Source of the DNA: Macrostomum lignano
Taxonomy: Eukaryota
DNA length: 39,760 nucleotides
Direction of reading: 5' to 3'
NCBI GenBank assembly: GCA_002269645.1
Contig: NIVC01004642.1
Coordinates: forward strand, 1-39,760
The position numbers and the translations under genes were made by a program. Under the pieces are notes generated by a model. It was not told the origin of the DNA. It worked only from the letters and a program-made list of their open reading frames with translations, and ran no database searches. This document shows, piece after piece, positions 1 to 38,004 of this stretch (positions are counted from its first letter, which is position 1; every line of letters begins with the position of its first letter).

Positions 1-1278
1 AGCATTAGCTCAATAGCTCAATATTATCGGATATCTGAAGCAAAGCCTTATAAGGTGCTTTTGTAATTGATTTCTATTATTTCCATTGTTGATCATTATC
101 ATTATAAAGTTTTGTTTTTTATAAGTAAATTTTGTAATAAAATGTTCGTATTTCGCTACTTAAAGTGGTATGTTGTGGGTTTCTAGTAATTAAATTTAGA
201 TTTTGTCCCAGTAAAAAGCTGGTTGAAAATTAAGTTGACAATAAATTTAAGTGTGACTCTTAAATTACAAATGCTTTACGACGTGCATATGGCTTTGGCA
301 GTGTTTAGGTAGGACTTTAAGCATCACAAATTAAAATTTAATTGCATTATATCGCACGGAACAGGCCCCAGACTCGTCTCGTAGCTTTCTAGGTAGGTTT
401 CGTTAGGCGAGATATCGATTTTTAACCTTAACCCACAGGCACGTCTCACCCCTTCCGGCCACCACCCCGTTCCTTGTAGACTTTAAACAAGTTTTATTGC
501 TATTTAGCCGGCAGGGTAGGAGTAATTTGGTCAGCTTTTTTATCAGCAATCAGCACCACTGCACCAACCCACTCCGCCCCTCCTTTCTGTCTTGCCCCAC
601 CCCCTAACGGCTAACTTTATTTCTTTGGCCTAAGCGGAATTTAGCTTTTCCTTATTGGATTGGTTGGCCGTTTGGAGACTGAAGTTTATCGATTGTTTTT
701 TAAACAGCGCTCCGATGCCCTGGTTTTTTGTCCGCTATGTCTTGTTTCACCCAAGTTTAACGCTTTCAGCTTTGCTTGGTAAATGCCTGAATGCGCAAAT
801 TGCAAGTCTGTTGCGTACTTTTATAAAGTCACAATTGACTTTCATATTTTGAGTGCATCGTTGTTCCGAGTCAGTCATTTATTGCCTATATGCATGTATT
901 ATTGATGGAATGCAATGGAATTTATAATACAGAATGGTGCATAAGTAGCCGAACCCAAATCCTATATAACTGAAAATGTAAAACTTAAAAACTAACAAGT
1001 TTTGTTAACAATACATAAAAGAAATAATGATAGATTAAAAAATTAATGCATACGAGCGTATTTTTGTGTTTATAATTGTGTTCGGCTACTTATGAACCAA
1101 CCTACACAAAATTAGCGCAATCATTTTGACTGGCTGTTGTTACCAAATCGACTGCAACAACTGTGTTCTATGGAATACACTCTTTGCAAAAAATGCCTCT
1201 CGTATTCTTGTAATTTTTTATGAATTTAACATATTGTTATTAATTTCCCCTCGTGTCGTTTTGTTCATTAATTATCAG

Positions 1279-1522
1279 GTCTTTTCGAATCGATCAATGA
1301 TTGCATATGCTTATTAGTTTTGTCTCTTCGGTAAGTTGCATCCAATCTGAACAGTGGTTGTCATACAGAAAATATAAGCTACTGGTTAATTAAACTCTCA
1401 GTTCACCTCCGCTCCGTCTATTGCGGAGTATATCCTGTGGGTCAATTATGAGACTGAACAGCCAAGACGGCTGTTGTTGTAAGAATGATTGACATGATCT
1501 TGGGTTTTTTATATTTCAGAGT
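1279..1522 (+). other. Possible chain of three small spliced exons (1279-1330, 1402-1478, 1520-), product unknown
   Basis: Good splice sites: ttatcag|G at 1278, CG|gtaagt at 1331, ctctcag at 1401, TT|gtaaga at 1479, atttcag at 1519. Only one phase combination stays open: ...LFESINDCICLLVLSLRSPPLRLLRSISCGSIMRLNSQDGCC*. No recognisable homology. Confidence 0.2.
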
Positions 1523-2259
1523 TATACTAGCTGCATAGATAATGCTTGCTGTTATTTCTAAGTTGATAATTTTAATAACTGCCTTGTTTGATTTATTTTG
1601 TCATTGCTGCAGTGTTTTCCTTTTCTGTCATTCGATTTTTTTGTATTTTGTGACTTCTAAGTGGCGCAGTTTTGTACTAGTTTGGTGTTTTTACCATTGG
1701 GCGATTCTGTGCCTTTCATTGGTCATAAATCATATTTATTCGGCTATATTACACCTATATGACTATGCACTCTTTGTTTAAGCTTTTGCCTGCTTAAAAC
1801 AATCTAATTTGTTTATTCTAAATGATTTAAGATTATTTTTTAAGTTAATAATTGTTAGCTTTTAAGTGGAATCTCTAGAGCATAGGTGTAAAAATAACGT
1901 ATAGAAACTCTGGATTCGAAATCTACTGATATAATCTCGTATGGAACCCTTGCAGTGGGTTGCAATCTAGACGGCGGTTTAAAAATACGCACTAGTAATC
2001 TTCGCGCAAAGAAAGGAATCACATTTTTTATCAATAAATCAAAAAATCACATGCAGCTTTTGACCTTGTATAGTTACTAAGTTTCCTAAGAAAAATGATG
2101 TTTAAAGCATGAAAACATCAGACCTCAAAGCCAGCTGGCTAGCCTAAGATATCATCAAAACTTCCCTTTAAAGCCATGGCTTAACCCTAAACCTCACTCC
2201 CCCCCTTGATGCTTGGACTACCAACAACCTCCAATTAATCCTTTGCAACTCAGTAACCC

Positions 2260-3400
2260 ATGAGTCACAGAATTTCAGCGATTTCCCCGTGAGCCTCGAC
2301 ATCTCACCAATTCCCCCATGAGCCTCGACATCTCACCAATTCCCCCATGAGCCTTGACATCTCACCAATTCCCCCATGAGCCTTGACATCTCACCAATTC
2401 CCCATGAGCCTTGACATCTCACCAATTCCCCCATGAGCCTTGACATCTCACCAATTCCCCCATGAGCCTTGACATCTCACCAATTCCCCATGAGCCTTGA
2501 CATCTCACCAATTCCCCATGAGCCTTGACATCTCAGCAGTTCCCCATGAGCCTTGACATCTTGACATCTCACCAATTCCCCCATGAGCCTTGACATCTCA
2601 CCAATTCCCCATGAGCCTTGACATCTCACCAATTCCCCCATGAGCCTTGACATCTCACCAATTCCCCCATGAGCCTTGACATCTCACCAATTCCCCATGA
2701 GCCTTGACATCTCACCAATTCCCCCATGAGCCTTGACATCTCACCAATTCCCCATGAGCCTTGACATCTCACCAATTCCCCCATGAGCCTTGACATCTCA
2801 CCAATTCCCCCATGAGCCTTGACATCTCACCAATTCCCCCATGAGCCTTGAAATCTCACCAATTCCCCCATGAGCCTTGACATCTCACCAATTCCCCCAT
2901 GAGCCTTGAAATCTCACCAATTCCCCCATGAGCCTTGAAATCTCACCAATTCCCCCATGAGCCTTGACATCTCACCAATTCCCCATGAGCCTTGACATCT
3001 CACCAATTCCCCCATGAGCCTTGACATCTCACCAATTCCCCCATGAGCCTTGACATCTCACCAATTCCCCCATGAGCCTTGAAATCTCACCAATTCCCCC
3101 ATGAGCCTTGAAATCTCAGCAATTCCCCCATGAGCCTTGACATCTCACCAATTCCCCCATGAGCCTTGAAATCTCACCAATTCCCCCATGAGCCTTGAAA
3201 TCTCAGCAATTCCCCCATGAGCCTTGAAATCTCACCAATTCCCCATGAGCCTTGACATCTCACCAATTCCCCCATGAGCCTTGAAATCTCACCAATTCCC
3301 CATGAGCCTTGACATCTCACCTCAGCAATTTCCCCATGAGCCTTGACATCTCACCTCAGCAATTTCCCCGTGAGCCTTGACATCTCACCAATTCCTCCAT
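2260..3400. repeat. 28-29 bp minisatellite (CCCCCATGAGCCTTGACATCTCACCAATT), roughly 38 copies
   Basis: Direct tandem repetition, with C4/C5 and GAC/GAA variants and degenerate ends. Confidence 0.97.
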
Positions 3401-4439
3401 TAACCTCGCTTATAAAAGAGATTTAGGGGACAAAAATGCAACATGGCATATTCATGTATTAATTAATAGCTCACCGATGTTTATGTATGTACCGGGTACA
3501 TTTTACCCCTGCATGTATATAGAAATGAAAACTTCTCCGACAAAAAATGAATTTGATATGCAGTCACCCACCGGAACGTAATAAGACTTACTAAGCACGG
3601 AGGGGCAAAATGCAATGCAGACAAAATCTGCCGTGTCTAAAAGCTTGAACGATCTTCCAAGATCGAAGCGGTTTATTGAAGGTTGATTGAGTTCTAATTT
3701 CTTTTTCCTTTTCTCAAGTCAAGTCTGCTTTGCTTGGTTGAAAAGACTTTTATATAAGTTATTTTTCATGATAAAAATTCGAACCCAGGTCGTTGCATTA
3801 GCAGTTCAGCCTGTTTGCACCTAGTCTATAGCTTTCATGAAATTTGAAGTATTTTTAGCCATTAATGATGAAACTATACGCTCGTACAAGTAGCACTCTT
3901 ATATGTGGAGTTACAAACTTGGGTCTTTATAGCTTCGAAAATTCATACTGATTATAGAATCACGAAAAAACGCAAGGACGTGCTTTTCTCTGGTGCACTG
4001 GCATGTATAAGTAAGGATTCCTCAATTGGATTTATCAAGCTCAAGTTATTCACACTTGGTCTGGTTGAGCTCAAAACTACATTGAATGGAACTTTTTGCA
4101 GCTTCGACGCGTAGAAGCCGGTCTGTGTCGATTCTTAGCTCTTACTCGTAGCTATAGGGCTGCCTTCGATCTCTTCTCTCCCCATTGAAAACACCAGCTT
4201 AATATAGCTTTTGTTACATTTACATATCGTTTTAAATTAACAAGTAACAATGCATCTCTACCGATTGTTGCTTTCTTTACAGGAAGCAGATTCCTGTCTG
4301 AATCGACGCGGGATCAGAGCTTTCAGTCATGGCAAGTTTGTAAAAAATTGCTAAAACTATTTTCAGTATGGCTAAATATATCGTATCTATCGCATCCGAT
4401 AGGCATTGTGGGATTTTTTGTTTGGTATCAACCTTAAAT

Positions 4440-6756: not shown

Positions 6757-6974
6757 TCAGCCAATCGGACAGGAGAACCGGCCGAGGCGACACCGCTTGA
6801 CAACCGTTGCTAGGTCCGAGTCGTGGCCCGCCGCAGCAGTCGCCGCCGCTTCGGTCGCCTCTCGCAGCTCCTTGGCCAGTCGTCGGGCAAGCCGGAGCAG
6901 TCGCAAATCGTGGCGCCTGGTGGCCGGCAACATTTCCAGCGTGTCGCGGCGGGACTCGCTCGGACCAAGTCGGT
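6757..6974 (-). CDS. Prepropeptide exon 2 (propeptide plus KR-CRLGRFSCPIG)
   Basis: Acceptor cctgagcag at 6975; 218 nt = 2 + 72 codons to TGA. The predicted mature peptide is encoded at 6760-6792. Confidence 0.72.
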
Positions 6975-7471
6975 CTGCTCAGGTTGAGATGGCAATTGGG
7001 GATAATGGAGATAATGATGGAACAAAGTTTGCAGCTTGCTGGCAGTGGATAATCTTCCGTTAGAAATGATTTTAAAAGCAAAAAATATTGCTTTCTTCCT
7101 TGTCTCAGTGTCCAGTGCACAATGCCCTAGTATGCATTATGTGTCCAAGTCATCCAGTGCTTTGGTGTCAGTTGTGTCCACCCCAGTTCATGTGTCTTTG
7201 TGTCTGCCTGTCTGTATGTAAAATTTCTATAATTTTCATTATTAATCTAATCCTCTTGTTTTCAACTGTCATCTAGGACGCTCTCCCTCTATTGTCATTA
7301 TTTGCAATTGTACTTTCCTAATCCCTCTAAGCCCCTGTTGTTACCCTTGCTCCTCGATCGCTCCTCCAGCCAGTCGGCCAAATCGACGCCGCCGTTGTCC
7401 AAACGCGCCAGCGCGACAGTCAGCATGGCTAAAGCGACGGTTGCCATGACAACCCCGGTGCGCGGCTGCAT
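6757..7471 (-). CDS. Two-exon secreted prepropeptide, 114 aa; candidate cyclic neuropeptide precursor (exons 7471-7345 and 6974-6757)
   Basis: Spliced translation: MQPRTGVVMATVALAMLTVALA RLDNGGVDLADWLEERSRSK-D-RLGPSESRRDTLEMLPATRRHDLRLLRLARRLAKELREATEAAATAAAGHDSDLATVV KR CRLGRFSCPIG*. Hydrophobic signal peptide ending A-L-A, phase-1 GT-AG intron of 370 nt with matching phases, GC-rich exons, dibasic site and terminal Gly. Confidence 0.75.
7345..7471 (-). CDS. Prepropeptide exon 1 (signal peptide)
   Basis: ATG at 7471; donor AAGG|gtaac at 7344; upstream acceptor ctacag at 7509 and a CCAAT box (minus strand) at 7660-7664. Confidence 0.75.
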
Positions 7472-7789: not shown

Positions 7790-8443
7790 TCCCACTGTGA
7801 CTTCCCTTCACTCCTCATTGTGACTTCCCTTCACTCCCACTGTGACTTTCCTTCACTCCTCATTGTGACTTCCCTTCTTCACTCCTCATTGTGACTTCCC
7901 TTCACTCCTCATTGCGACTTCCCTTCACACCTTATTGTGACTTTCCTTCACTCCTTATTGTGACTTTCCATCACTCCTCATTGTGACTTTCCTTCACTCC
8001 CACTGTGACTTTCCTTCACTCCCCACTGTGACTTCCCTTCACTCCCCACTGTGACTTCCCTTCACTCCTCATTGTGACTTCCCTTCACTCCCACTGTGAC
8101 TTTCCTTCACTCCTCATTGTGACTTCCCTTCTTCACTCCTCATTGTGACTTCCCTTCACTCCTCATTGCGACTTCCCTTCACACCTTATTGTGACTTTCC
8201 TTCACTCCTTATTGTGACTTTCCATCACTCCTCATTGTGACTTTCCTTCACTCCCACTGTGACTTTCCTTCACTCCCCACTGTGACTTCCCTTCACTCCC
8301 CAGTGTGACTTCACTTCACTCCTCATTGTGACTTCCCTTCACTCCCCACTGTGACTTCCCTTCACTCCCCACTGTGACTTCCCTTCACTCCCCACTGTGA
8401 CTTCCCTTCACTCCCCACTGTGACTTCCCTTCACTCCCCATTG
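7790..8443. repeat. 22-23 bp minisatellite (CTCATTGTGACTTCCCTTCACTC / CCCACTGTGACTTCCCTTCACTC) with a 254-bp higher-order duplication
   Basis: Tandem units. The rare variant ATTGCGACTT recurs at 7911 and 8165 with the same neighbouring variants. Confidence 0.95.
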
Positions 8444-8895
8444 TTCAGTATTGGAGTAAATTAATAAAAGTCGAAAAGATCTAAATGAGTTAATCGATAT
8501 TTAACGGCGAAGCGATGTACTTACTTTCATATTGGCGAATTCGATTTGCTAAACACAAGCCTGCTGTTGTTGTCAAAAACGAATGAGATCAAAGTCTAAG
8601 AATGCGACGAGATTCTTATATGTAATTACATGCATAACCTCGTCTAAACTGCCGATAGGGAATGCATAGATGGCTAAGCGGTATATAGCTTGAGATTAAA
8701 GCTGGTGATTAAGGGTCCGTTGATGATGGCCACCGCTGATCAAAGTGATCATTGCTCGCCTTGGGTCCTGACTGTTCTTGTGAGATAAGTGTGTCTTATA
8801 AGAAATTATAAACTAGATAATACCATAATTAAGGTGGAAGATCGCCAAAAAAGTTCCTCAATTCTGGGCAAATTTTCGAGTCCATAAAGTACAGT

Positions 8896-9294
<399 letters not shown>

Positions 9295-14216: not shown

Positions 14217-15083
14217 CTAGGCGGGCCTACTGTCGTACTTGGTGTCCCGACAGTTGCAGAGGGGGAAATTGCAGCAGTCCTGCAGCCAGGGCCGCCACAT
14301 GAGCTTGGCGAAGGTGAACTGGCTCGGCACTGAGCTCAGGCTCGCCTGATGACGCCTCTCAGCTTCGAGAATTTGCGGCACCAGACGACGGTAGCGCTCC
14401 GAGTCGGCAGGGACGATGGCGGTCTCGCGCTCGTCGGCGCTGAGGTCGTACAGCAGTGGCACCGAGTGTCGAACGCTGCCGAGGCCTTCCATGCAGCCGC
14501 AGATGTAGCGGCAGCCCTCGGTGCCTGGCAGCCAGTTGGGGGAGTAGTGCCGCAGCTTGAGCACCCCCTCGGGCGAGTTCCAACGCACCGCGTGCAGCAA
14601 GGTGCCGCAGTATTGAAATAGAAAGTCGTGAGGCGATTTTGTTGATTGAGGCTGGCGCAGGAGCTTTGTGATGCTGCGACCGTCGATGCCCGACGGTACC
14701 GGCTGGCCCATGGCCTCCAGCAGAGTCGGGAAGATGTCCATCTGGGAGGTCAGCGCGTTGCTCTGACTGCCAGCCGGGATGACGCCAGGCCAGCGCAGCA
14801 GTCCAGGCACGCGGATGCCGCCGTCAACGGCGCCCTGGCACTTGCTGCCCCGATAGATGCCGTTGTGGCCGCCGGCCCGCTCGCCCGTGTGCGTCGTCTC
14901 CTCGATGTGGCCGCCATTGTCCGAGCTGAAGTACACGATGGTGTCGTCGGACAGGCCACGCTTGTCCAGAGCGTCGAGGATCTGGCCGACGGACCAGTCC
15001 ATCTCTTCGATGTTGTCGCCGTACCAGCCGTGGGCGCTGCGGCCTCGATATCCGGGTACCGAATTGTACAACGGGGAGTGCAC
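14217..15083 (-). CDS. Arylsulfatase exon 4 (terminal)
   Basis: Acceptor gccgcag; VHSPLY...SDNGG...CCNFPLCNC...stop. Confidence 0.95.
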   Translation of the reverse strand: MHSPLYNSVPGYRGRSAHGWYGDNIEEMDWSVGQILDALDKRGLSDDTIVYFSSDNGGHIEETTHTGERAGGHNGIYRGSKCQGAVDGGIRVPGLLRWPGVIPAGSQSNALTSQMDIFPTLLEAMGQPVPSGIDGRSITKLLRQPQSTKSPHDFLFQYCGTLLHAVRWNSPEGVLKLRHYSPNWLPGTEGCRYICGCMEGLGSVRHSVPLLYDLSADERETAIVPADSERYRRLVPQILEAERRHQASLSSVPSQFTFAKLMWRPWLQDCCNFPLCNCRDTKYDSRPA

Positions 15084-17707
15084 CTGCGGCATTTTGGAAG
15101 AACGGGGCCAAGCATTAACTATTTGAAATTCAACGCTACCCCAGACTCAATCGGATAGTTCACACCTCCTGAGCACCGCTACCCCAGACTCAATCGGATA
15201 GTTCACACCTCCTGAGCACCGCTACCCCAGACTCAATCGGATAGTTCACACCTCCTGAGCACCGCTACCCCAGACTCAATCGGATAGTTCACACCTCCTG
15301 AGCACCGCTACCCCAGACTCAATCGGATAGCTCACACCTCCTGAGCACTGCTACCCCAGACTCTTTTGGATAGTCCACACCTCCTGAGCACTGCTACCCC
15401 AAAGAAAAATGAGGCAAAAGCTAGTAGAATGAGTCAGCTCCGAACCTGCAGGAAAGACATGAACAGCAGAAACGGCTTCCCCTCGTCCACCGCCTTGTCA
15501 AGGAACTCTTCGCCTTCCCAGACCAGCCGCTGGGTCAGTTTCTCAAATCGAATTGGCTGTTCAACCAGCTCGGTTTGCCGATGAAGCTGGCTGTTCACGG
15601 TGCGGACTAGGTAATCCGGCAGGCAGAATAGGAATCCGGTAACAAGGACGCCCAGCAAAGCTAAGAATATGCAGAGCTTTCTGGGCAGGATGCCAATTTT
15701 GTAGCCCACACCGAGAGAAGCCAATGTAGCCAGTAGTGTGAGGCTAATGTTTCTGTAGTAGTGAGGGAATCGCGAATGTAGGACCGACTCGCCTAGGCCG
15801 CTGAAATCTTTCAACAGAGTCAGCAGGCAGCCGTAGAAATAGTCGAAGCCGTGGTTGTTCGGATGGTGGCAGAAGTCTTTGCTGTTGCTGCAGTGGGCGC
15901 CCAAATGCCACTTTCCTGGTGGTGTAGTTGCGCAATAGTGGCGGATCGGGCATACAGTGCATACATGTCCCTCACACCCACCACCCCAAGACAAGCCCCT
16001 CACACCCACCACCCCAAGACAAGCCCCTCACACCCAACACCCCAAGACAAGCCCCTCACACCCACCACCCCAAAACAACCCATCACGCCCAGCACCCCAA
16101 AACAACCCTTCATATCCACCACCCTAAAACAACCCCTCACGTCCAGCACCCCAAGATAAGCCCCTCACACCCACCACACCAAAACAACCCATCACGCCCA
16201 GCACCCCAAAACAACCCCTCACACCCACCACCACAAAACAAACCCTCACGTCCAGCACCCCGAAACAACCCCTCACATCCAGCACCCCAAAACAACCCCT
16301 CACATCCAGCACCCCAAAACAACCCTTCACATCCACCACCCTAAACAACCCCTCACGCCCAGCACCCCAAAACAACCCCTCACACCCACCACCACAAAAC
16401 AATCCCTCACATCCAGCACCCCAAAACAACCCCCCACACCCACCACCCTAAAACAACCCCTCACGCCCAGCACCCCGAAACAACCCCTCACACCCACCAC
16501 CGCGAAAAAATCCCTCAAACTCAGCACGCAAAACAAGTCCCCACAGCACAATCTCCAAATCCAATAATTAAAATGTACAACAAAAAATGCATGAAGACCG
16601 GTCGATCGCTCACCAATCAGTCCGGTGCGGTAGCCAGACCGCTGAGCCACCTTGGCAAAAGTGGTCTCATTAGTTGGTAAACCGGCTTGGCTAGCCGTGA
16701 ACGGGAACACCTGCATCTGGATGCTGGGCACCATGCCCATCCTAATGGGATATTTTCCCGTCAGCAGTGCCGACCGACTCGGCGTACAAACTGGCGCGGC
16801 TGTCAGGTGGTGCGACAGCCGGACGCCCTCCTTGGCGATTCTGTCAACATTCGGCGTTCGAATTGTGGTATTGCCGTTGGCGCCTGTGAAGTTAGAAGGA
16901 AATTTTAGTAAATTAGGATAAAGCATTGAACTGTTTTGCAACCAAAGCTAAAATAATATTCGAATCAGGGAGGCTGTACGTTCGTAACCCGCATATATAG
17001 ATAACACGAATCGTTATCTATATATTAACAAAGCAGTGAATGTTTAGTCAGTATGTCATTTACATACATGTATATATATACTGCTAAGCGGGGCCGTAGC
17101 CCAGCGGTCTAGCGCAGGCTCTGATGTGCCAGCGGCCCAGGCTCGATTCCAAGTGCAGTCACATTAATTTGGGGCTACATTGGAATCTCGGCTTGGCTCT
17201 GCTCGTGCAATTAACGCCCAGCTTGAGGGCCAACCCCCAAGGCACAGTGAAGTGTACATGCCTTACGATCAATAAAGTTAGGGCCGCTGTACACTCCTGT
17301 GTGAGTGTGTGCCTGTGCGTGTGACTGCATACGTATCTGCGCGCTTGTGTGACTGCTCAGGGGAGTCGGCGGAATGCGGGCAGCAATGCTTCTTGCCAGC
17401 TGTGTGACAAATATGTCGCTTAAAGTGCGCCGGCCTGACATGCCACTGGCAAGACGTTAAACTATCTTAGAATAAATTTAAAGCATTCAAGAATTGAGAA
17501 ATGAAAATTAAATTAAATTAATTATTTTTTTCTTTTAGAACGGCCTACAAACCAGAAGGACTCACCGATGTCGCCGAAACCCAAGTCGTCCACCAGCAAT
17601 ATGAGGATGTTCGGCTGTTTTTTAGTTGCCTTCTCTGTTGGCGAGCTGACAACAAGACTCGGCAGCAGCAACAAGAGTGTTACTATGGCCAATTTGATCG
17701 GCGGCAT
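14217..17707 (-). CDS. Arylsulfatase of the steroid sulfatase (STS/ARSD/ARSE/ARSH) subfamily; complete, 4 coding exons, about 580 aa
   Basis: Exons 17707-17566, 16883-16614, 15915-15446 and 15083-14217 join with consistent phases 1/1/0. Signal peptide, NILILLVDDLGFGD, formylglycine motif CTPSRSALLTG, GKWHLG, hydrophobic hairpin (SLTLLATLASLGVG...IFLALLGVLVTGFLFCL) typical of STS-type enzymes, FSSDNGG, GGIRVP, C-terminal WLQDCCNFPLCNC. Confidence 0.95.
15135..15400. repeat. 43-bp minisatellite, about 6 copies, in arylsulfatase intron 3
   Basis: GCTACCCCAGACTCAATCGGATAGTTCACACCTCCTGAGCACC at 15135, 15178 and onward. Confidence 0.97.
15446..15915 (-). CDS. Arylsulfatase exon 3 (GKWHLG, membrane hairpin)
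   Basis: Acceptor caccaccag, donor CAG|gttcgg; 470 nt. Confidence 0.92.
15970..16500. repeat. About 28-bp C/A-rich minisatellite (CACACCCACCACCCCAAGACAAGCCCCT and variants) in arylsulfatase intron 2
   Basis: Tandem degenerate units; source of the ORFs at 15928-16429. Confidence 0.95.
16614..16883 (-). CDS. Arylsulfatase exon 2 (active-site CTPSR)
   Basis: Acceptor cttcacag, donor G|gtgagc; 270 nt. Confidence 0.93.
17090..17435 (+). mobile_element. tRNA-derived SINE in arylsulfatase intron 1
   Basis: A box GTAGCCCAGCGGTCTAGCG, B box GGCTCGATTCC, and a body matching the inverted copy at 28870-29280 over about 300 bp. Confidence 0.85.
17566..17707 (-). CDS. Arylsulfatase exon 1
   Basis: MPPIKLAIVTLLLLLPSLVVSS...QPNILILLVDDLGFGDI; donor G|gtgagt. 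Confidence 0.9.
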
Positions 17708-20830: not shown

Positions 20831-23800
20831 CTGGGAATGCAGAATGTGTGCATTATGACCTTACTTTCCAGAAGAGGAAAGATGAGATGATATATGAAAA
20901 AAGAGAAAAGAGGCGAGAGAGGAAATTAGATGGCAGACACGAGAAAGCTGAGAAGAGACAGAAACTTTGTTCGGCACTTGGAGCCCGATACTGAACCTCG
21001 AATACGCACCATAAAAAGCCTTATTTTGCGCAGACATCAAACAGCAAATCGAATCCAGTAGCCAAGTTTTCGGCTAAAATTATTAGAACTAAAAACATCG
21101 TACTAATAGTAGCATGGTGCACAATTAAATAAAACAACAGGCTCACTCGGTAAGTCGTCCCGATGCCCGCAGCCGGTGTCCACCATCGGGCCGTCATGAA
21201 TCCGGATGCCATCTGTCTGGATGTAGTGCGCGCGCTGGCACGGCTCGTCGAATCGCATCCGTTCCGGGTGCTCCGGGTGGTAAGTGAAGTAGGAGCCGGA
21301 GTCGTCGCCGAGCGCCGTCGCGTCTAAAGGCCGGTAGAGCGACACCGTGTCGCGACAAGCGATCGAGCGGGACAGCGGCTTATCGAGCCGAACAGAAGGG
21401 ACCACCACCTCTGGGTCGGTCTGGCACTCTCGGCTGCTAATCTCAATGTCCGAATTTGAGAGCGCATCTAGACAGGCTTTCACGCTGGCTACGGCGGTCT
21501 CTGTGTGAGTCTGCGACTCCACTTCGCAGCATTCTGGACCTGTTGAGGTGCGCATCTCGCTTTGCACAGCGTCCACAGCCCAGAGCGAACCAGTGTCCGT
21601 AGTTTTCATTGGCTGCGACTTCACGTGGCCAAGGAGAGAGTCTGGTTGATGCCACGAGCTTGATACAGCTTGCTGGACAGCTTCAGACGACAAAGTGGTC
21701 CCAGCCTGACATACGGCATCGGTCGTGGGCAGAAGCTCATTATCAACTTGACTGTCGGCATGCCTTGTCTGCTTAGCAACAACTTTGATGGGCTCACTAT
21801 CAGCATCTAGCTTGACCGAGACGCACCGCTGCTCAGACGATAGTTCGTAAATACTTCCAGTATTTGCTAACTTCAAACTTGAACTCGCATTGACACTCGC
21901 CTGGCTGAAACTCCACGTACTCACACCGGCTGACGATCCCGTCTCGCAGTGTCCTAACTGAGTGTGGTCGGTCTGATTGCAACTGTCCGAATATTTCAGG
22001 CTGGGTTCGCGGCTTGCATGAAGTCTTTCGGTAATGATAAACTGCTCAGGTTCCTCAATGTCCAGTGTCTGCGTCTCGCACTCCTTTACATTAATTCCAA
22101 GGTGTTGACTGCCTGTCTGATTCAAATTAGGCAGCCTAGCAACAACGAAATCGAGTGTACCCGGTTGAATCTCTGCTCTGGTGTTGACTGTCTCTTCAGC
22201 TTTGCCTGGAGGACGCGCAACAACCACAGCGACGCTGCTGTTGGATCGCGTAAGACTCCACTCGCCGAGAATAGCGGAGTCTGAGAAGTCAGACCAGCTG
22301 CGACCAGCCTGACATTCGTTGTCCTCTCTGTCAAAGAAAAAGCTGCATCCAGACTGGCATTCGAAGTTCTCGAATTCTGAATGGCTGCAGCCAGCCTGGC
22401 ATTCGACATTTTCTCTACCCAGGAAGAAGCTGCAACCAGCTTGGCATTCGAAATCTTCTGAATTCAAGCCTCCGGTACCGGCCTGACATTCACTATTAGT
22501 TATCTCAAAGGTACCAGAGCCCATCTGATTTTCAGCCTCTTGCCTATCAAAGAAGAAGCTGCAGCCGGATTGACAAACTGCGTCGACCTGACATTCGACC
22601 CGTTTCGAATCCAACACCGGGCCCATGTTGACCGAGACGTACTGCTGCTGAGATGGGACATCGTGAATGCTTCCTGTCTCGGCTAGCTGGAGCCGACTGT
22701 TCGCTCTGACAGCATCTTCAGCGAAGCTCCAACAGCTCACACCAACCGATAACTCGATTTCGCGTGTGAAAAACCTCGAGTCAGTTTGTTCGCTGCCATC
22801 CGAATAACTGATTTTAAGGCTCTGAGTGGGTTGTCTTTTCTCAATAATAACTTCCTGATCCGTTTGCGTTCCGAATTCTTTTAAAGGTGTCACCAAGTGC
22901 ATGCTACCTGTGTGAGCCACTGCGGCAACTCTTGCCACGGCGGAACTGTCACTTGAAAGCCTCTGCGTACGAGCAATTGCTTCGGCAGTTTGTCCAAAGC
23001 ATAGAGCCAGAACTTCGTCAGTCGCTGGACGAATCAGGACGGAGTCGTCTGAATACTTGCTCCAATGTAAGGTGCTCCATTCGCTGGGAACGGCTGAGTC
23101 AGTTAGTTCCCGACTGTCTGCTTTGCCAGTCTGGCAGTTTGAGTTTATCATCTCAATATCAATGCTTCCGCAGGCTCTGACGACCTCCTCGCGGGTGTCT
23201 ATTTTGGCTGAGACAGATTGCGGCTCACTAAGAACCTTATGCAGACTACCGGTCTCAACTAACGCAATTGAATTTGAGCACACGTTTGCCTGACTGAAGT
23301 CCGTGAAAGCATTTGTACCCACCGAAACGATTGCATCGCTGAGCAGGAAGCCACTGCAACCAGCTTGAACCTCGGCATTGAGGCGGCTAAACAGACTGCC
23401 ATCAGTTTGAATTTGGCTGCTGTAAGTCTCGGCAACTTTTTTTATCTCCGTTAGTGCTTCTGGTGCGTCCGTCTGGATTGCCATGTCAGTAAGTACAACC
23501 TGCAAGTGCTGACTGCCTGTGTGGCTCAGTTCTGGCAGTTTGGCAATGGCTGAATCAGTCTGCACAGTCTGTACGGCCTCGGATGATGCGTCACTGGAAT
23601 TGGTGACCCAGTGGGCAGCAGTATCCGCTAGCACCGGGTGCACGCACATGGAGGCTAAAGCTGACACAGGCGATGGTGGGCGCTGCTGTTTTGCCAATGA
23701 CTCGCTCCACTCTCTTGAAATAAGCTGCTCCTTGAACTGAAATTGACTACAGCCAACTTGACAGTCGCTCTCCACTCTGTCAAAGTAGCTGTAACCGGTC

Positions 23801-26800
23801 TGACAGTCGCTCTCCATTCTGTCAAAGTAGCTGCAACCGGTCTGAGAGTCGCTCTCCGTTCTGTAAAAGTAGCTGCAACCGGTCTGACAATCGCTCTCCG
23901 CTCTGTCAAAGTAGCTGTAACCGGTCTGACAGTCACTCTCCGCTCTGTCAAAGTAGCTGTAACCGGTCTGACAGTCGCTCTCCGCTCTGTCAAAGTAGCT
24001 GTAACCGGTCTGACAATCGCTCTCCGTTCTGTCAAAGTAGCTGCAACCGGTCTGACAGTCGCTCTCCGTTCTGTCAAAGTAGCTGTATCCGGTCTGACAA
24101 TCGCTCTCCGTTCTGTCAAAGTAGCTGTAACCGGTCTGACAATCGCTCTCCGCTCTGTCAAAGTAGCTGTAACCGGTCTGACAATCGCTCTCCGCTCTGT
24201 CAAAGTAGCTGCAACCGGTCTGACAGTCGCTCTCCGCTCTGTCAAAGTAGCTGCAACCGGTCTGACAGTCGCTCTCCGCTCTGTCAAAGTAGCTGTAACC
24301 GGTCTGACAATCGCTCTCCGTTCTGTCAAAGTAGCTGCAACCGGTCTGACAGTCGCTCTCCGCTCTGTCAAAGTAGCTGTAACCGGTCTGACAATCGCTC
24401 TCCGTTCTGTCAAAGTAGCTGTATCCGGTCTGACAATCGCTCTCCGTTCTGTCAAAGTAGCTGCAACCGGTCTGACAGTCGCTCTCCGCTCTGTCAAAGT
24501 AGCTGTAACCGGTCTGACAATCGCTCTCCGTTCTGTCAAAGTAGCTGTAACCGGTCTGACAATCGCTCTCCGTTCTGTCAAAGTAGCTGTAACCAGCCTG
24601 GCACTCACTATCTGCTTTGTCGAAAATACTGAATCCAGCTTGGCATTCAGTATGAATTAAGTCGAAGTAGCCGGGCCCAATCTGACACCCTGTCTGATTA
24701 AATGAGAAGCTGCTGCAGCCCATCTGAGTCACAGCCTCATTAGTCCCGCAGATAGCCTCAATGGCGACATTGTGAACTCCAACATCGTAGCAGCTAGCTG
24801 TGTCTGTTAATAGAGACTGCGCGTTCGCCTGACCATCAACACCATCCCATGCACTGATCCCGGCGCATGACTCTGCATCCAGCCGGTCGAAGTAACTGTT
24901 ACCAGACTGCTCGCATTCGTCCAGCCGATCAAAGTCGCTGGCCCCTGCTTGTTGGCAGAAATTCACACCGTGGAATGCGCTTGCTCCGGACTGATGACCT
25001 TGATCCGTGGTGTGGAATGCGCTCGCTCCAGATTGATGACCTTGATCCGTGGTGTGGAATGCGCTCGCTCCAGATTGATGACCTTGATCTGTGTTGTGGA
25101 ACGAGCTTGCTCCAGATTGATGACCTTGATCTGTGGTGTGGAATGCGCTCGCTCCAGATTGATGACCTTGATCCATGTTGTGGAACGTACTTGCTCCAGA
25201 TTGATGACCTTGATCTGTGCTTTGGAACGCACTTGCTCCGGACTGATGACCTTGATCCGTGGTGTGGAACGCGCTTGCTCCGGACTGATGACCTTGATCC
25301 GTGGTGTGGAATGCGCTTGCTCCAGATTGATGACCTTGATCCGTGTTCTGGAATGCGCTTGCTCCAGATTGATGACCTTGATCCGTGTTGTGGAATGCGC
25401 TCGCTCCAGATTGATGACCTTGATCCGTGTTGTGGAATGCGCTTGCTCCGGACTGATGACCTTGATCCGTGTTCTGGAATGCGCTTGCTCCAGATTGATG
25501 ACCTTGATCCGTGTTGTGGAATGCGCTCGCTCCAGATTGATGACCTTGATCCGTGTTGTGGAATGCGCTTGCTCCAGATTGATGACCTTGATCCGTGGTG
25601 TGGAACGCACTGCACCCAACCTGCTGACCTTGATTCGTCTTGTCGAACGCGCTGCACCCAACCTGCTGACCATAATCGACCGATTCAAAAGCGCTGGCTC
25701 CTGTTTGAACACCGAATTCAAACGCAAAGTGAAGATGCGTCCGCACGCCGGCAATCGCGGTGGCTGGAGCGCAGATCACGTGACCTATAGCCGGCTCCGG
25801 ACAAGTCTGCTCCCCGCGACTGAAACTCTCTGCGCCCGCCCAGACCGCTATGTCCTTGCTAGTGATGCCTGTGTTCACGCTGTCGTGAGCAGCTTCAGGT
25901 GGCGAAGTCTGCGCACTGGCGCAGTCGAACTGCGGTCCAATCTGCACAGAAATATCACTAGCGTCTTCAAGTGCCAGGCGACATTGAACGCCGCTGTCGG
26001 AAAGCCCTTCGATACGCAAATCCGCCAGCGGACTGTCAACGAACTGATCAACTGTAAGCAGCTTTCCGGCCGCTGCGCACCTGGTCTCGACTATGTCGGG
26101 TTGGTAGCGCATCGACGAGTCGACGCGACGCTCGTCGCGATCCTGCCGTCTCCAACGAGTCAGATCGAGTGTGTCGCTAGCCTGATCAGCAACGGACTCT
26201 GAATGCTTCGTTGCGACAACCAACACGCTGGCGGTGGGGTTTTTAGCCGTTAGCATCGTTTGGCTCGCCTCGGAGAGGCTCGGCGGCCGGGCTCGAACCT
26301 CGGACTGACGGAGACCGACAGGAGCGGTTGTCTGCGCCGCCTGGTGTCTGAGGACTGGCGGCTGCCGCATTGACTGCTGCGGCTGTGGTGGTGGCGGCGG
26401 TGGTTGTGGCTGCATCACTGCACTCGTCTTAACTAAAGCATTTGCTGTCGCCACTGTCGAGGCTCCGACGACAACGCCGCTGACGACAAAGTCCACAGAC
26501 GGCTTCGACTCGGCTGGTTTCAAATCCAGGTGGCCAAGTTTAGCTGTGGTTGTCATGGAGACCTCAGCGAGGACTATCGGTTCAGTGGTATCGTAATCGT
26601 CTGACGGAGCTTTGGCTGCGGATTTGAGGCTGCGTTGCAGCAGCTCGAGACGTTCGCTGCTGCATTGTAGAAGTCTGAGTTTTAATTGGCGAGTTACGAA
26701 TCGAGATACATTATAACTATGCTGATTTGATATACTAATGATATGGTATACTACTGATATGGCATACTACTAATGAGATACTACTGATATCATTTACTAA

Positions 26801-30639: not shown

Positions 30640-33600
30640 TTAGTTAGTTAGTTAGTTAGTTAGGTAGTTAGTTAGTTGAACTCAAGACTCACAGTGGCCG
30701 TTGTGAGTAGTCGCTTAGTCCGTTCCGGATGATGAAGATGGAACAGGCACTCCAGCTGGCGCGAAGCGTGTGAAAAACTGCGCCCCATTCGGCCACCAGC
30801 GTCGTGGCATTCAACGTGGAAAGAGTTGTAGTCGGCCGCGTTTCTCGAGTGCAGGCGCAGCAGCACGGAGAGCTGGTCCAGCCACTGCCAGCAGCGCTGA
30901 GCGGAGCCGGCAAGCGGCTTGCGGACTGTCGAATCCAAGGAGCCTGACGACGGCTCGGATGGAGGACCGCTGGTGGACAGCCGGTGCGCCTCTGATGTCA
31001 CGGCTGCGGCAGAGGACTGCGGATGGGCGATCGATATTGATGGGGGCTGATCGGCCGCCATTGTACAGCTTCCCTCTCTCCCTGCCCCTCTCTCCCTACC
31101 CCTCTCTCCTGCCCCTCTCTCCCTGCCCCTCTCTCCCTGCCCCTCTCCCCTGCCCCTCTCCCCCTGCCCCTCTCTCCCTGCCCCTTTCTCCTGCCCCTCT
31201 CTCCCTGCCCCTCTCTCCCTGTCCCTCTCTCCCTGCCCCTCTTTCCCTGCCCCTCTTTCCCTGCCCCTCTTTCCCTGCCCCTCTTTCCCTGCCCCTCTCT
31301 CCCTGCCCCTCTTTCCCTGCCCCTCTTTCCCTGCCCCTCTTTCCCTGCCCCTCTCTCCCTACCCCTCTTTCCCTGCCCCTCTCTCCCTACCCCTCTCTCC
31401 CTGCCCCTCTCTCCCTGCCCCCCTCTCCCTACCCCTTTCTCCTTGACCCTCTCTCCCTGTCCCTCTCTCCTTGACCCTCTCTCCCTGTCCCTCTCTCCTT
31501 GACCCTCTCTCCCTGTCCCTCTCTCCTTGACCCTCTCCCCTTGCCCTTCTATCACAGCCCCTCTTCCTCTGCCTCTCTCTCCCTTCCTTTCTCTTTCAGC
31601 CCCTGCCTCGCTCCTCCTCTCTTTCCCTGCCTTTAAGCAAATTTTAATACTATAATTCTCTGTGCTGATTAATAATATTGCTTCGAGTTGCTGAACGAGT
31701 GCATGCGCACTTCAAGCTGTGAGCTCGGGTATTTACCAATAACTATGATAGCTATATAGCGGTTCTCCTTGCCTGCATGCAGACCATTCGCCCTACCGAT
31801 GCTCAAACTTGCTCACCGCCTCTCAAAATCATAGTTCTTATATTCGCGCTGTATAGTTAATTAAATACAGCACTTGGCTGCAGTGGATGGAATTCTTTAG
31901 CTTAGTCAACTAGGAGATTGTATTGGCGCCCCCAATACTAGTGCAGAGCCTATACTACGAGTACTGTAGTCCATGTTTGTGTAAATTAATAAACAGCAAG
32001 CTGAGGCAGTCGTAGGCTTAGGGATTTTGTTTTCATTAGCACACTAAGAATGTTGAATAGCTATTCTTCGACGAGACAGCAATACTTAACTGTGTTCATT
32101 TATAGCTCTCTTTTGAAAATCTGATTTCAAATCTCAGCATTGCCGCTATTTTCGAGAATATCGATCTTTTGTGCCTTTGATGATTGTATAGGCTGTACTG
32201 GTAGCCAAGTTAAAAGGCAGGGAGGGGCAGGGAGAGAGGGACAGGGAGAGAGGGACAGGGAGAGATGGGTAGGGAGAGAGGGACAGGGAGAGAGGGGTAG
32301 GGAGAGAGGGGCAGGGAAAGAGGGGTAGGGAGAGAGGGGCAGGGAAAGAGGGGCAGGGAGAGAGGGGCAGGGAAAGAGGGCAGGGAAAGAGGGGCAGGGA
32401 AAGAGGGGCAGGGAAAGAGGGGCAGGGAAAGAGGGGTAGGGAGAGAGGGACAGGGAGAGAGGGGCAGGGAGAGAGGGGCAGGGAGAAAGAGGCAGAGAGA
32501 GAGAGAAGCAGGGAGAGGGCCAAGGAGGGATGGGCAGGGATAGAGTGAGAGAACAGGAGATAAGACGGGAGACAAGAGAAGGGAGAGGGAAGTCGTGAGA
32601 ATAGAGCAAGGTATACATGTAGAAAGGAGTTATTAAGAAAAGGGTAGAGAGATCCGAATACGGAGGTGGAGACAAGGAGGCGTATAAGGAAGGAAACTGA
32701 ATGCATAAATACATGTAGGAGTATTAGGATGCTAAAGTGAGTAAATTTCCCGATAAATTTAGACAGATGCAACACAACAGAACAGATAACTCTCTTACGC
32801 CAAAGGTGTCCTCCAAGCTGGCAATCTTGGCTATGAAGTCAAGCGAAGCGATGTTGTCTCCGACTCTTCGTCCTGCGACGCTGCACTGCTCTCTAGCTGG
32901 GCGAGACAGGTCCTGTTATGTAGCAACAATTAATTTAATAAACAGCACGGGGCTTAGGCTTGGGCTTCCTGAGAGGGAAGAGCCATGTACTTTTCTTAAA
33001 TGGGGGACGCTGTTAACTTTAGCTGCCCTACTAGTGTAGCATTCTGGTCACAATTACCACCCGATTTGACTCTTGGAGCAGTTTGAGTTACCCATGACAT
33101 CAGGTTTAACTTTATCGCCTTTATTCGACCTATAGCCTTACAACAGCGCTGACGACCATTCTATCGATTCCACTGACTCTTGAGCACATGGGTGTACAGC
33201 GGCCTAGACTTTCTAATCGTCAGGACTCTTAATTCATGTCTTGTATGTTGGCTCTCATAGACAACTGCAATGGAATGAGGCTACACAAGGAGCTATAGAT
33301 GCTGCTATTGCTAGGTAGTACATTTTAAACCGATTGCAGTGTCAAAATGTGTGCATTAAATGCATAGTCTATGGCCGCTCCATATCTCGCGCAAATCAAA
33401 CAGCGTGAATTGAATGAAAAAAGCGTGCATTAAATGCTTAGTCTATGGTCGAGACTCCAGATTGAATCGTTATAACAATACTGCTCGATACTTGGTTTTT
33501 AGCGTTTAAATGTCTTGGCCACGAGTGCGCGAAGCCTATTATACATTTAGTATCTGCGGTATGCTCTAAGAGAACGCCATAGATAACGCCATAAAAGGTT

Positions 33601-35775: not shown

Positions 35776-36578
35776 GTAAGTCATTACAGTTAATTAAGTT
35801 CTACAGCAATAATTTGCTGTAGTTTTTTAACCTTGTTACGAGTCTGCGCTAGCCTTATTATTAAATGAAATTATAAAATAAAATATTAAAGTCACACTTT
35901 GCATGGACGTCTTACGATTCAAACTCGTGTTTAAACTACGCTCGAAACTAACTTGTGACTGCGTTTAACGCACAGTTGGTTCATAATACTGCATAACTAT
36001 TAGGTTATTCCGATGCATCTCTTACTTAAAATACTTTGTTGTTGTTGGCTTACTGAAAACGGAATTGTACAGCCAAGATTGTACCATTTTAGATCGGTTT
36101 TTCGCCACTTTGAACTAGATAAACTAGTGTCGACTCTTTAAGGTTTACTAATCAATAGGACTTCTACAGCTGCAGTCCCAGTTCCCGGTTTGTTGCTAAA
36201 TCCGCTTTCCTTTTGATTAAAAGATTTCAAGACAGCTTTCAGTGCGCCTTGGTTTGGCATTGACTTTGGACAACTACATGCCAGGCGCTTGCTTCTATTT
36301 TTGGACAAACATCAGCTCAAGATTAATTAATTAACGCGTCTAAATCCGCGCGGTTTCGATTTGACAAGAGTCCTTGACAATGCGTGAAAATGAAAAAATG
36401 AGTCCGCTGTGCCTGCGTACAAGTATTTATCCATAAAGAACTAAATGCTTATATCCAGCATCTGCAATGTCACCACAACCATAATCATTAGGAATCACCA
36501 CACAATCATCTATTTGAACTTCAAAAACAAATCAATCCAGATGCTCAAGCTCCATACCAACTCACCTTTAATTCACAG
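35776..36578 (+). other. Probable 5' UTR intron of the GPCR gene
   Basis: Consensus donor CTG|GTAAGT at 35776 and acceptor ctttaattcacag ending at 36578, 19 nt before ATG 36598. Confidence 0.5.
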
Positions 36579-36597
36579 ATTTCACTCCAAAACTGCA

Positions 36598-38004
36598 ATG
36601 CTCGAGTCAGGCGGCAAGAATGACAGCAGCGATTTTGTCAAACAAGTGGCCGCCGCCATACGGAATTTCCGTGATTTCGAATCAATCTGTCTGGGCATCG
36701 GTCTCCGGTCCGTCTGCTTGCTGGGCATCGCTGGCAACTTGCTCACAGTTTTAGCCTTCGCTAAGCCCTGCAAGCGACGACAGCGCGGCGGCGTAGCTAG
36801 CGGAGATGGTTTAGGAGGCCGACCAGCAAGGCTGGAGAGCTCCATGTCGCAGTCGCTGATGGCCCTAGCCGTGTCGGATTTGTGCATCTGTTTGAGCTCG
36901 CTGCCGATCAGCAAGACCAGACCGCAATGCTCATCTTTGAGTCTACTTTATTCGCAGATTATTGGCCAGGCTTTCGCCAATATTTTCATGGCGTCTAGCG
37001 TGTGGCTCACTTTAACAATTACGATTTGCCGCTACCTGGCTGTCTGGCGGCCGCTGCAGTCGCGCAACTGGCTCAACCGGAGAAAACTGCGCGTCTCAAT
37101 TGGCATCGTTTTTGTCGCCGCTGTTGTGTTGCATTTCCCTGATTTCTTTAAATACGAAGCGACAATAGACAACTCGACTAATAGTAACTCGTGCTACACT
37201 TTCAACCGGAGGAAAGAGCTGGACCCTGGCATGAAATGGCACGCTTATATTTACTACTGGGCCACTATTTTGCTAGTAAACGCGTTGCCTCTACTCGGCA
37301 TCGTAGTCTGCAACATCCGCCTAATCCTGGCCTACAGGTCCAGTCTGCGACAGCGCAACCAGCTGAACGCCCAGAATGGCAATCAAGAAGATGCTACAAC
37401 GCGTTTGCAAGGCAACGGTGCCGGAGCTGTACAGCAGACAGACAATCTGACACCGTTATTGGTGACCGTCACCTTGCTGTTCCTTGTGCTAATCAGTCCA
37501 GGCCAGATACTCAACCTGCTGTGCAGGAGATACATTAGCAACACTTTGCTCAGCCGCCTCAAGAGCTCCGAATTCGCAGCGATTCGAACATATTATATAC
37601 TGCAGAGACTGACCAGTCTGACAACGCTAAGCCAGGTAACTGGCTGCGCTATTAACTTCATCTTCTACTGCCTGGTGTCCGCCTCGTTCCGCAAATCGCT
37701 GGCCGCCGCCCTGCGCTCGCTGGCAAGCGGACTCTGCTGCTGCTGCCGTCGTCGGGCTCGGAACGAAGCCGCAGGCAGCGGAACTTTCAGCAGAAGCGGC
37801 GTCGCCGTCGCCGTCGGACGCAGAGTTGAAACTGACAACTTCGAGTGCGTCGTCAGGCGCATTGCTGCCGACCAAGAAGTCAACGTCGATTATAATAGCG
37901 CCGTTCTCGATACCAGCGCGCGCACCGCAGTGACGGCGCTCATCGAGCCCGGCATGATCGGACAGGAGGCTGCTGAAAGCTTCGAACTCGACAAAGTGAA
38001 GTAG
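36598..38004 (+). CDS. Class A (rhodopsin-family) peptide GPCR, FMRFamide/myosuppressin/sex-peptide-receptor-like; intronless CDS, 468 aa
   Basis: Seven hydrophobic segments; GNLLTV (TM1), LAVSD (TM2), ICRYLAV (DRY variant), LHFP (TM4), LP (TM5), SP (TM6), NFIFYCLVSASFR (TM7/H8); CCCC palmitoylation cluster; N-glycan site NDS. ATG 36598 chosen because of the acceptor just upstream; the ORF itself is open from 36445. Confidence 0.93.
   Translation: MLESGGKNDSSDFVKQVAAAIRNFRDFESICLGIGLRSVCLLGIAGNLLTVLAFAKPCKRRQRGGVASGDGLGGRPARLESSMSQSLMALAVSDLCICLSSLPISKTRPQCSSLSLLYSQIIGQAFANIFMASSVWLTLTITICRYLAVWRPLQSRNWLNRRKLRVSIGIVFVAAVVLHFPDFFKYEATIDNSTNSNSCYTFNRRKELDPGMKWHAYIYYWATILLVNALPLLGIVVCNIRLILAYRSSLRQRNQLNAQNGNQEDATTRLQGNGAGAVQQTDNLTPLLVTVTLLFLVLISPGQILNLLCRRYISNTLLSRLKSSEFAAIRTYYILQRLTSLTTLSQVTGCAINFIFYCLVSASFRKSLAAALRSLASGLCCCCRRRARNEAAGSGTFSRSGVAVAVGRRVETDNFECVVRRIAADQEVNVDYNSAVLDTSARTAVTALIEPGMIGQEAAESFELDKVK

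Follow-up and report, generated by a model that had tools for sequence, protein, structure and literature searches.

A Two-Exon Gene of the Flatworm Macrostomum lignano as Candidate Precursor of an Orphan Cyclic Amidated Peptide

Cyclic Peptide Families Close to the Candidate Precursor

In Macrostomum lignano, a flatworm that is marine and free-living, a small gene on contig NIVC01004642.1 (assembly GCA_002269645.1, Mlig_3_7) encodes a protein of 114 residues that ends with CRLGRFSCPIG, the candidate cyclic peptide discussed here; the window that we have analyzed is this complete contig, 39,760 nucleotides (nt) in length. The arrangement of the precursor raises a question of classification: Does its terminal peptide belong to one of the described families of disulfide-linked peptides, or does it stand apart from them? 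The nearest known layout is that of the allatostatin-C (AstC) and somatostatin kind, AstC being the relative of somatostatin in protostomes, although membership of this family itself is doubtful. In protostomes, AstC peptides have a Cys loop of exactly six residues that follows no strictly conserved motif, most loops containing Asn, often also FxP, and having an aliphatic or aromatic residue in first position; the proregion intron shared by AstC and somatostatin-type precursors is in phase 0 (PMC9048919). Amidation within AstC is known only for the arthropod paralogue AstCCC (PMC5627052), and the AstC of Aplysia, SHYSSMCMFNVVACY, has a tail of one aromatic residue ending as a free acid.

The second family to be considered is that of vasopressin/oxytocin-type peptides, the invertebrate members of which all have a disulfide between Cys1 and Cys6, the peptide placed right after the signal peptide and a neurophysin domain next to it, as well as including cephalotocin, CYFRNCPIG-NH2, and octopressin, CFWTSCPIG-NH2 (PMC7181382). 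The precursors of this type in M. lignano are PAA85176.1, PAA50340.1, PAA46766.1, and PAA87831.1 (platytocin paper, PMC8896804). A third family, that of MCH-type peptides, is characterized by a C-terminal peptide with a Cys pair, Met or Ile after the first Cys and a basic residue penultimate to the second Cys, with 8 residues between the two in vertebrates or 10 in ambulacrarians; the ArMCHP precursor of starfish has 88 residues (PMC4772807). Starfish have also provided orphan candidates, namely Arn24, which is C-terminal and amidated with two Cys, and Arn25, which is amidated with a C-x4-C ring and resembles vasopressin/oxytocin in a way that the authors ascribe to possible convergence (Semmens et al. 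2016, PMC4772807). Like our candidate, these are two-Cys amidated peptides predicted from sequence alone, but they come from another phylum and their sequences are unrelated to it; without claiming homology, we regard them as analogous in kind and as resting on evidence of the same standing. In comparison with all these systems, we read the M. lignano gene, on balance and with moderate confidence, as encoding a 114-residue prepropeptide for one orphan cyclic amidated peptide, which would be lineage-specific and belong neither to the vasopressin/oxytocin nor to the MCH family.

Gene Structure and Indirect RNA Support

The gene lies on the minus strand and has two coding exons. The first (7471..7345, 127 nt) starts with the ATG at 7471 and encodes the signal peptide plus the start of the propeptide, that is, residues 1-42 and the first base of codon 43; it is followed by an intron of 370 nt (7344..6975) with GT..AG borders, which is in phase 1 because exon 1 is 127 nt long. 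The second exon (6974..6757, 218 nt including the TGA) encodes the Arg/Ala-rich spacer, the Lys-Arg (KR) site and the terminal peptide up to the stop. The donor reads AAG/GTAACA and the acceptor ...CCTGAGCAG/ACC on the minus strand. When joined, the exons form a coding sequence (CDS) of 345 nt, the product of which begins with MQPRTGVVMATVALAMLTVALA followed by RLDNGG and ends with VVKR-CRLGRFSCPIG and the stop; the full translation of 114 residues is MQPRTGVVMATVALAMLTVALARLDNGGVDLADWLEERSRSKDRLGPSESRRDTLEMLPATRRHDLRLLRLARRLAKELREATEAAATAAAGHDSDLATVVKRCRLGRFSCPIG. The guanine plus cytosine (GC) content of the exons is 0.65 and 0.68, versus 0.40 in the intron, and the values for the three codon positions of the CDS (GC1/GC2/GC3 = 0.70/0.54/0.76) follow the order GC3>GC1>GC2, as in the sulfatase and G-protein-coupled receptor (GPCR) genes of the window. 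An in-frame TAA is found 18 nt upstream of the ATG, which has an A at -3. Codon-usage scores computed with few window genes as reference do not separate the annotated frame from one alternative, frames 0 and 2 being tied at -0.133.

The acceptor of the intron is a NAGNAG tandem (GAGCAG, 6975-6980, with the two AGs at 6979-6978 and 6976-6975). Splicing at the upstream AG would introduce an additional Ala (..SKADRLG..) while leaving the frame and the C-terminal peptide unaffected. Throughout exon 2, none of the GT contexts resembles a donor and all are poor with respect to GTRAGT; splicing onward before the stop, a possibility which the earlier note on this DNA had named as damaging to its proposal, is therefore unlikely.

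The same note had proposed that two GC-rich exons splice in phase to give a protein of 114 residues, and this is borne out by the phase-1 GT..AG join together with identity to existing records. Along its entire length, the spliced protein shows 100% identity to the GenBank entries PAA46943.1, PAA58986.1, and PAA67221.1 of M. lignano, labeled "hypothetical protein BOX15_Mlig019832g1/g3," and it matches UniRef100_A0A1I8GIK8, which is named "Secreted protein"; the annotated span of the gene on NIVC01004642.1 is 7471..6757 of the minus strand. Hence, the two-exon model is confirmed as a real gene, which was not hidden, as had been thought, since it is already public with exactly the same model. 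Its absence from the track of open reading frames (ORFs) that was available for the initial inspection is due to the mechanical list of ORFs holding only two halves of the precursor, of 57 and 58 residues. How well is the exon junction supported? The GenBank annotation of the assembly was built from a genome-guided RNA-seq transcriptome alone, using StringTie and TACO followed by TransDecoder for the CDS, with transcript boundaries set by trans-splicing and poly(A) reads (PMC5730564). Because the GenBank models derive only from RNA-seq transcripts, the junction has indirect RNA support. The gene is thus real and publicly annotated, though uncharacterized, and its reading as a prohormone is apparently new.

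Features of the Candidate Precursor and Its Predicted Product

The N-terminus of the protein has a basic n-region, then a hydrophobic core of 16 residues (residues 7-22, with a hydropathy peak of 2.0-2.6 over residues 7-21) and a hydrophilic chain thereafter; according to the hydropathy profile, this is the single hydrophobic stretch of the precursor, with no other membrane span. The profile indicates a predicted signal peptide at residues 1-22 (7406..7471, minus strand), probably cut after the sequence A-L-A, which has small residues at -3 and -1. The signal-peptide-like nature of the N-terminus had been recognized earlier, and it is upheld by the profile, by the small residues at -3 and -1 and by the UniRef name. 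Between the signal peptide and the terminal peptide lies a spacer of about 80 residues, helical-looking and rich in Arg and Ala; the propeptide has a net charge of about 0, acidic and basic residues numbering 15 each by our count. The spacer contains the dibasic pair RR at residues 51-52, 62-63, and 73-74, and the claim of a single dibasic KR in the precursor must be corrected in this respect. Conceivably, the RR pairs could give rise to further, non-amidated fragments as products.

The terminal part of the precursor conforms to the initial description in all its elements, for the spliced translation does have a KR followed by an 11-mer with C-x6-C and a terminal Gly. The dibasic site, Lys102-Arg103 (AAG CGG, 6793..6798), is a predicted target of prohormone convertases and precedes directly the 11-mer CRLGRFSCPIG, residues 104-114 (6760..6792), which contains the only two cysteines of the protein, Cys104 and Cys111, continues with P-I-G and is followed immediately after Gly114 by the stop TGA (6757..6759). 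Of the generic features of precursors for amidated peptide hormones, a predicted signal peptide, small size, a dibasic site, and a C-terminal Gly are present. The overall architecture, as deduced from the translation, is that of a prohormone with one C-terminal peptide.

Following standard prohormone biochemistry, the N-terminal 22 residues would direct the protein into the secretory pathway at the endoplasmic reticulum and then be removed. Cys104 and Cys111, as the sole cysteines, would form a disulfide, and a convertase of PC2 type would cut after Lys102-Arg103. Because the peptide ends the precursor with Gly, amidation is directly possible: The peptidylglycine alpha-amidating enzyme could act on this Gly without further trimming, yielding the 10-residue product c[CRLGRFSC]PI-NH2 with a net charge of approximately +3. 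The computed monoisotopic [M+H]+ for CRLGRFSCPI-amide with the Cys104-Cys111 disulfide is 1148.58. The spacer of some 80 residues may serve as a carrier or sorting sequence that evolves freely, and the peptide would most likely function as a neuropeptide or peptide hormone acting on a GPCR.

Genomic Copies and Sequence Constraint

We have retrieved four genomic copies of the gene. Three of the four encode the identical protein of 114 residues, on as many Mlig_3_7 contigs that include NIVC01004642.1, and the remaining one is a homeologue, BOX15_Mlig011990g1 (PAA92798.1), with about 94% identity. All four copies retain the start, the splice sites, and an intact ORF up to the TGA stop, and indels occur only in the flanks and in the intron, the latter accounting for 27 gap columns against none in the exons. 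In exon 1, the copies differ only where the homeologue has clustered changes, in codons 39-42. The seven residues that differ in the homeologous protein, at positions 40, 42, 54, 59, 64, 96, and 101, all fall within the interval 40-101; residues 1-38 and the last 13, which correspond to the KR plus CRLGRFSCPIG, are unchanged. In the homeologue (P0002), both the KR and the terminal Gly are kept, and the amino acids of the 11-mer are identical, the Cys111 codon showing one synonymous change from TGT to TGC.

In all, the homeologue has approximately 7 non-synonymous versus 5 synonymous codon changes. The probability that seven substitutions would leave free both the first 38 and the last 13 residues is, by our calculation, about 0.016 for a partition that was picked post hoc. 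Conserved ends flanking a freely changing spacer would fit a neuropeptide precursor, but the comparison of homeologues is too low-powered for detecting constraint.

The copy on NIVC01001500.1, when aligned with the window over 8.7 kilobases (kb) around the gene, has 0 mismatches and 66 gap columns; that on NIVC01002311.1 has 38 mismatches and indels of >1 kb over the same interval. The presence of near-identical copies (L002, L004, and L003, the last being the window) is consistent with redundancy of the assembly and with the additional chromosome copies that have been described in line DV1.

Evolutionary Interpretation

Of the two options contemplated in the earlier note, an unusual oxytocin-like peptide or a new family of cyclic peptides, we consider the latter to be the most likely, following the logic of the sequence features presented above. 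As far as sequence searches can indicate, the precursor would lie outside every known peptide family, with no detectable relatives beyond M. lignano. Whether queried with the full-length protein, its homeologue, or the terminal 30 residues, Pfam (E<=10) returned nothing beyond a sub-threshold match to DUF834; among PDB sequences, the sole match was to a designed protein and of low complexity. The strings KRC, RRC, CPIG, SCP, and LGRF do not occur in the supplement text on Schmidtea prohormones, nor in that of the polyclad larval atlas, both weak negatives as the sequences given there are possibly incomplete.

Several results weigh against the view that the gene encodes such an orphan signaling peptide. 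When 5.8 billion proteins were screened by a word-indexed search (E<=10), only the M. lignano protein itself was recovered, and the same outcome was obtained with an exhaustive phmmer search of 1.84 billion cluster representatives, collections that evidently are without other macrostomid proteomes. In the searchable literature, there is no paper naming the gene identifiers Mlig019832 and Mlig011990 or the peptide. The exons of the homeologues diverge by 3.7-5.5%, which is not below the 3.8-7.0% of non-coding sequence, and, by our own calculation, 7 changes among 114 residues would be expected to spare a tail of 13 in 43% of cases. Moreover, a rough estimate indicates that a secreted protein with a dibasic site, a Cys pair, and a terminal Gly could arise by chance about once in a proteome of ~70,000 models, for a class that was defined post hoc.

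If the orphan peptide is real and neuronal, it would provide a new ligand of 10 residues that is easily synthesized, in a flatworm model that is transgenic and tractable by RNA interference. Such a ligand would be useful for the deorphanization of receptors and for asking whether flatworms retain a system resembling that of AstC and somatostatin. Should the peptide prove not to exist, the gene would be another lineage-specific secreted ORF.

Among the alternative explanations, the one that survives best considers the gene product as a secreted protein other than a neuropeptide, cleaved or not at the KR: a peptide or small protein of glands, epidermis, or reproductive tract, for example, a cationic loop peptide resembling antimicrobial ones or a seminal or adhesive component. 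The signal peptide and the name "Secreted protein" agree with it, and many products of secretory glands are similarly lineage-restricted with a fast-evolving middle part. Antimicrobial peptides include short cationic disulfide loops in C-terminal position. However, the enclosure of one short peptide between a KR and a Gly followed by the stop is typical of amidated signaling peptides; a product of 10 residues, four of which are hydrophobic, is short for activity on membranes; and the propeptide is nearly neutral, whereas antimicrobial precursors commonly have an anionic pro-piece. We deem this explanation unlikely.

Could the gene be the highly divergent flatworm orthologue of AstC, acting on a receptor of AstC/somatostatin type? 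The resemblance in layout, which had been pointed out from the start, holds in several respects: The precursor is small, of about 115 residues, with a signal peptide, a long spacer containing a proregion intron, and a single copy of the peptide at the extreme C-terminus past a dibasic site, and the loop C-RLGRFS-C has exactly six residues. Even the predicted amidation has a precedent in the arthropod paralogue AstCCC (PMC5627052). What does not hold is the detail. The RLGRFS loop has neither the usual Asn nor FxP, and its first position is taken by Arg where an aliphatic or aromatic residue would be usual, admittedly a soft criterion; the tail is a predicted P-I-NH2, in contrast to the single aromatic residue with free acid of AstC; and the proregion intron is in phase 1 instead of the shared phase 0. 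In addition, none of our searches brought up an AstC or somatostatin precursor of similar sequence. Orthology with AstC is thus a rather doubtful proposition. A related idea is that the peptide founds a family, specific to macrostomids or flatworms, of cyclic neuropeptides with an amidated end, and in the boldest version it would be the long-missing flatworm representative of the AstC/somatostatin superfamily, with a Pro-Ile-amide convergent on that of oxytocin-type peptides; this too we can only propose as speculative and improbable. Were it true that the peptide belongs to the AstC/somatostatin system, it would offer the first handle on this signaling in Platyhelminthes.

Still less probable is that we are dealing with a young, transcribed, lineage-specific ORF that yields no processed bioactive product, its prohormone-like features being coincidental. 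This would account for the lack of homologues beyond M. lignano, for the exon divergence and the numbers of non-synonymous and synonymous changes noted above, and for the GC-rich exon 2 being open in several frames. Yet, the ORF, splice sites, and stop remain intact in four copies with exons free of indels, a product of 114 residues unites a signal peptide with a KR, a single pair of Cys, and a Gly at its end, and the seven substitutions spare the N-terminal part and the C-terminal peptide, with the probability already given for that post hoc partition.

The idea that the earlier note placed first, namely an atypical oxytocin-like peptide lacking neurophysin, would require a derived vasopressin/oxytocin-type gene that has lost neurophysin and enlarged its ring. 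The tail is the part of this comparison that stands. Isotocin and mesotocin also carry a CPIG-amide tail, and the candidate has, like this type of peptides, a disulfide ring (here predicted) followed by Pro-Ile-Gly, in which the Gly would be the amide donor. The match extends to C-P-I-G-stop in cephalotocin and to S-C-P-I-G in octopressin (PMC7181382). Family membership, in contrast, fails on the three features that define all the invertebrate members: The ring is C-x6-C (C-RLGRFS-C) and not C-x4-C; the peptide closes the precursor (residues 104-114 of 114), some 80 residues beyond the signal peptide rather than directly after it; and there is no neurophysin, given the stop after Gly114, the presence of two Cys only, and the absence of a Pfam match. 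A four-residue match may easily be convergent, as the authors of the starfish study say of Arn25 (PMC4772807). Furthermore, the accessions of our candidate (PAA46943.1, PAA58986.1, PAA67221.1, and PAA92798.1) are distinct from the four of vasopressin/oxytocin type in the same species (PMC8896804), and the candidate is for this reason not the M. lignano orthologue of those precursors. The derivation from a vasopressin/oxytocin-type gene is accordingly very improbable. If the orphan peptide that we favor is real and neuronal, it would constitute a clean case of CPIG-amide tail outside the vasopressin/oxytocin family and recommend caution in annotating neuropeptides by motif.

The weakest alternative is a protostome peptide of MCH type, suggested by the similarity of vertebrate MCH, RCMLGRVYRPC, to the C-x-L-G-R-[VF] of the candidate; signaling of MCH type has so far been reported in deuterostomes only. 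This echo (RC-x-LGR in the first description) can be dismissed as extremely unlikely, for what remains of it is one C-terminal cyclic peptide with a Cys pair past a dibasic site, in a precursor similarly small to that of ArMCHP, while the candidate has Arg after Cys1, Phe penultimate to Cys2 and 6 loop residues where MCH-type peptides have Met or Ile, a basic residue and 8 or 10 (PMC4772807), is predicted to be amidated, unlike them, and has no match to Pfam Pro-MCH at E<=10.

Surroundings of the Gene

From about 320 base pairs (bp) upstream of the precursor ATG, a 23-nt tandem repeat extends over 7796-8444 with approximately 28 copies of the unit TGTGACTTCCCTTCACTCCTCAT, and this repeat is found upstream of all four genomic copies (L001-L004). 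Further upstream on the coding strand, an (ACAG)n tract with some 102 copies (8891-9294) forms a microsatellite that gives rise to long minus-strand ORFs of "CLSV" type, which are spurious. Next in the upstream direction comes a multi-exon sulfatase gene on the minus strand (14217-16941), with the Pfam domains Sulfatase and Sulfatase_C and an annotated product of 585 residues. The homeologous loci have a Sulfotransfer_2 gene downstream of the precursor, and the gene order sulfatase, precursor, sulfotransferase is kept between homeologues; the spans related to sulfatase or sulfotransferase in other copies are 714-3821 and 16923-20353 of L001 and 12009-14296 of L004.

The plus strand of the window contains, at 36445-38004, an intronless ORF of 519 residues for a rhodopsin-family GPCR (Pfam 7tm_1, 3.8e-20, with a weaker match of Srw type), for which the annotation of the assembly has no gene recorded with the exact product of 519 residues or with either of two shorter starts. 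Its nearest solved relatives are the bradykinin B1, 5-HT2B, and CCK-A receptors, at ~1e-6 only, and not receptors for somatostatin, MCH, or oxytocin. We considered whether this gene and the precursor could form a pair of receptor and ligand, and rejected the idea on account of these relatives and of the 29 kb that separate the two genes.

Other elements of the window are repetitive. On the minus strand, a single ORF of 1,817 residues (21103-26556) has no Pfam match and includes two long arrays of 42-nt (14-residue) repeats, at 23759-24594 and 24970-25653, with units ..CQTGYSYFDRTESD.. and ..SGASAFHNTDQGHQ..; the ORF may encode a repetitive protein of secreted or structural nature that is specific to the lineage. 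Two arrays of 14-nt tandem repeats, at 31072-31584 (CCCTCTCTCCCTGC) and 32222-32545 (GAGGGGCAGGGAGA), are separated by about 650 bp, each being approximately the reverse complement of the other, and produce strong GC skew of opposite sign as well as long spurious ORFs rich in Pro, Leu, and Ser. Finally, the strongly negative GC skew at 2000-3500 is explained by a tandem array of 29-nt units (2281-3400), about 38 in number and 93% matching.

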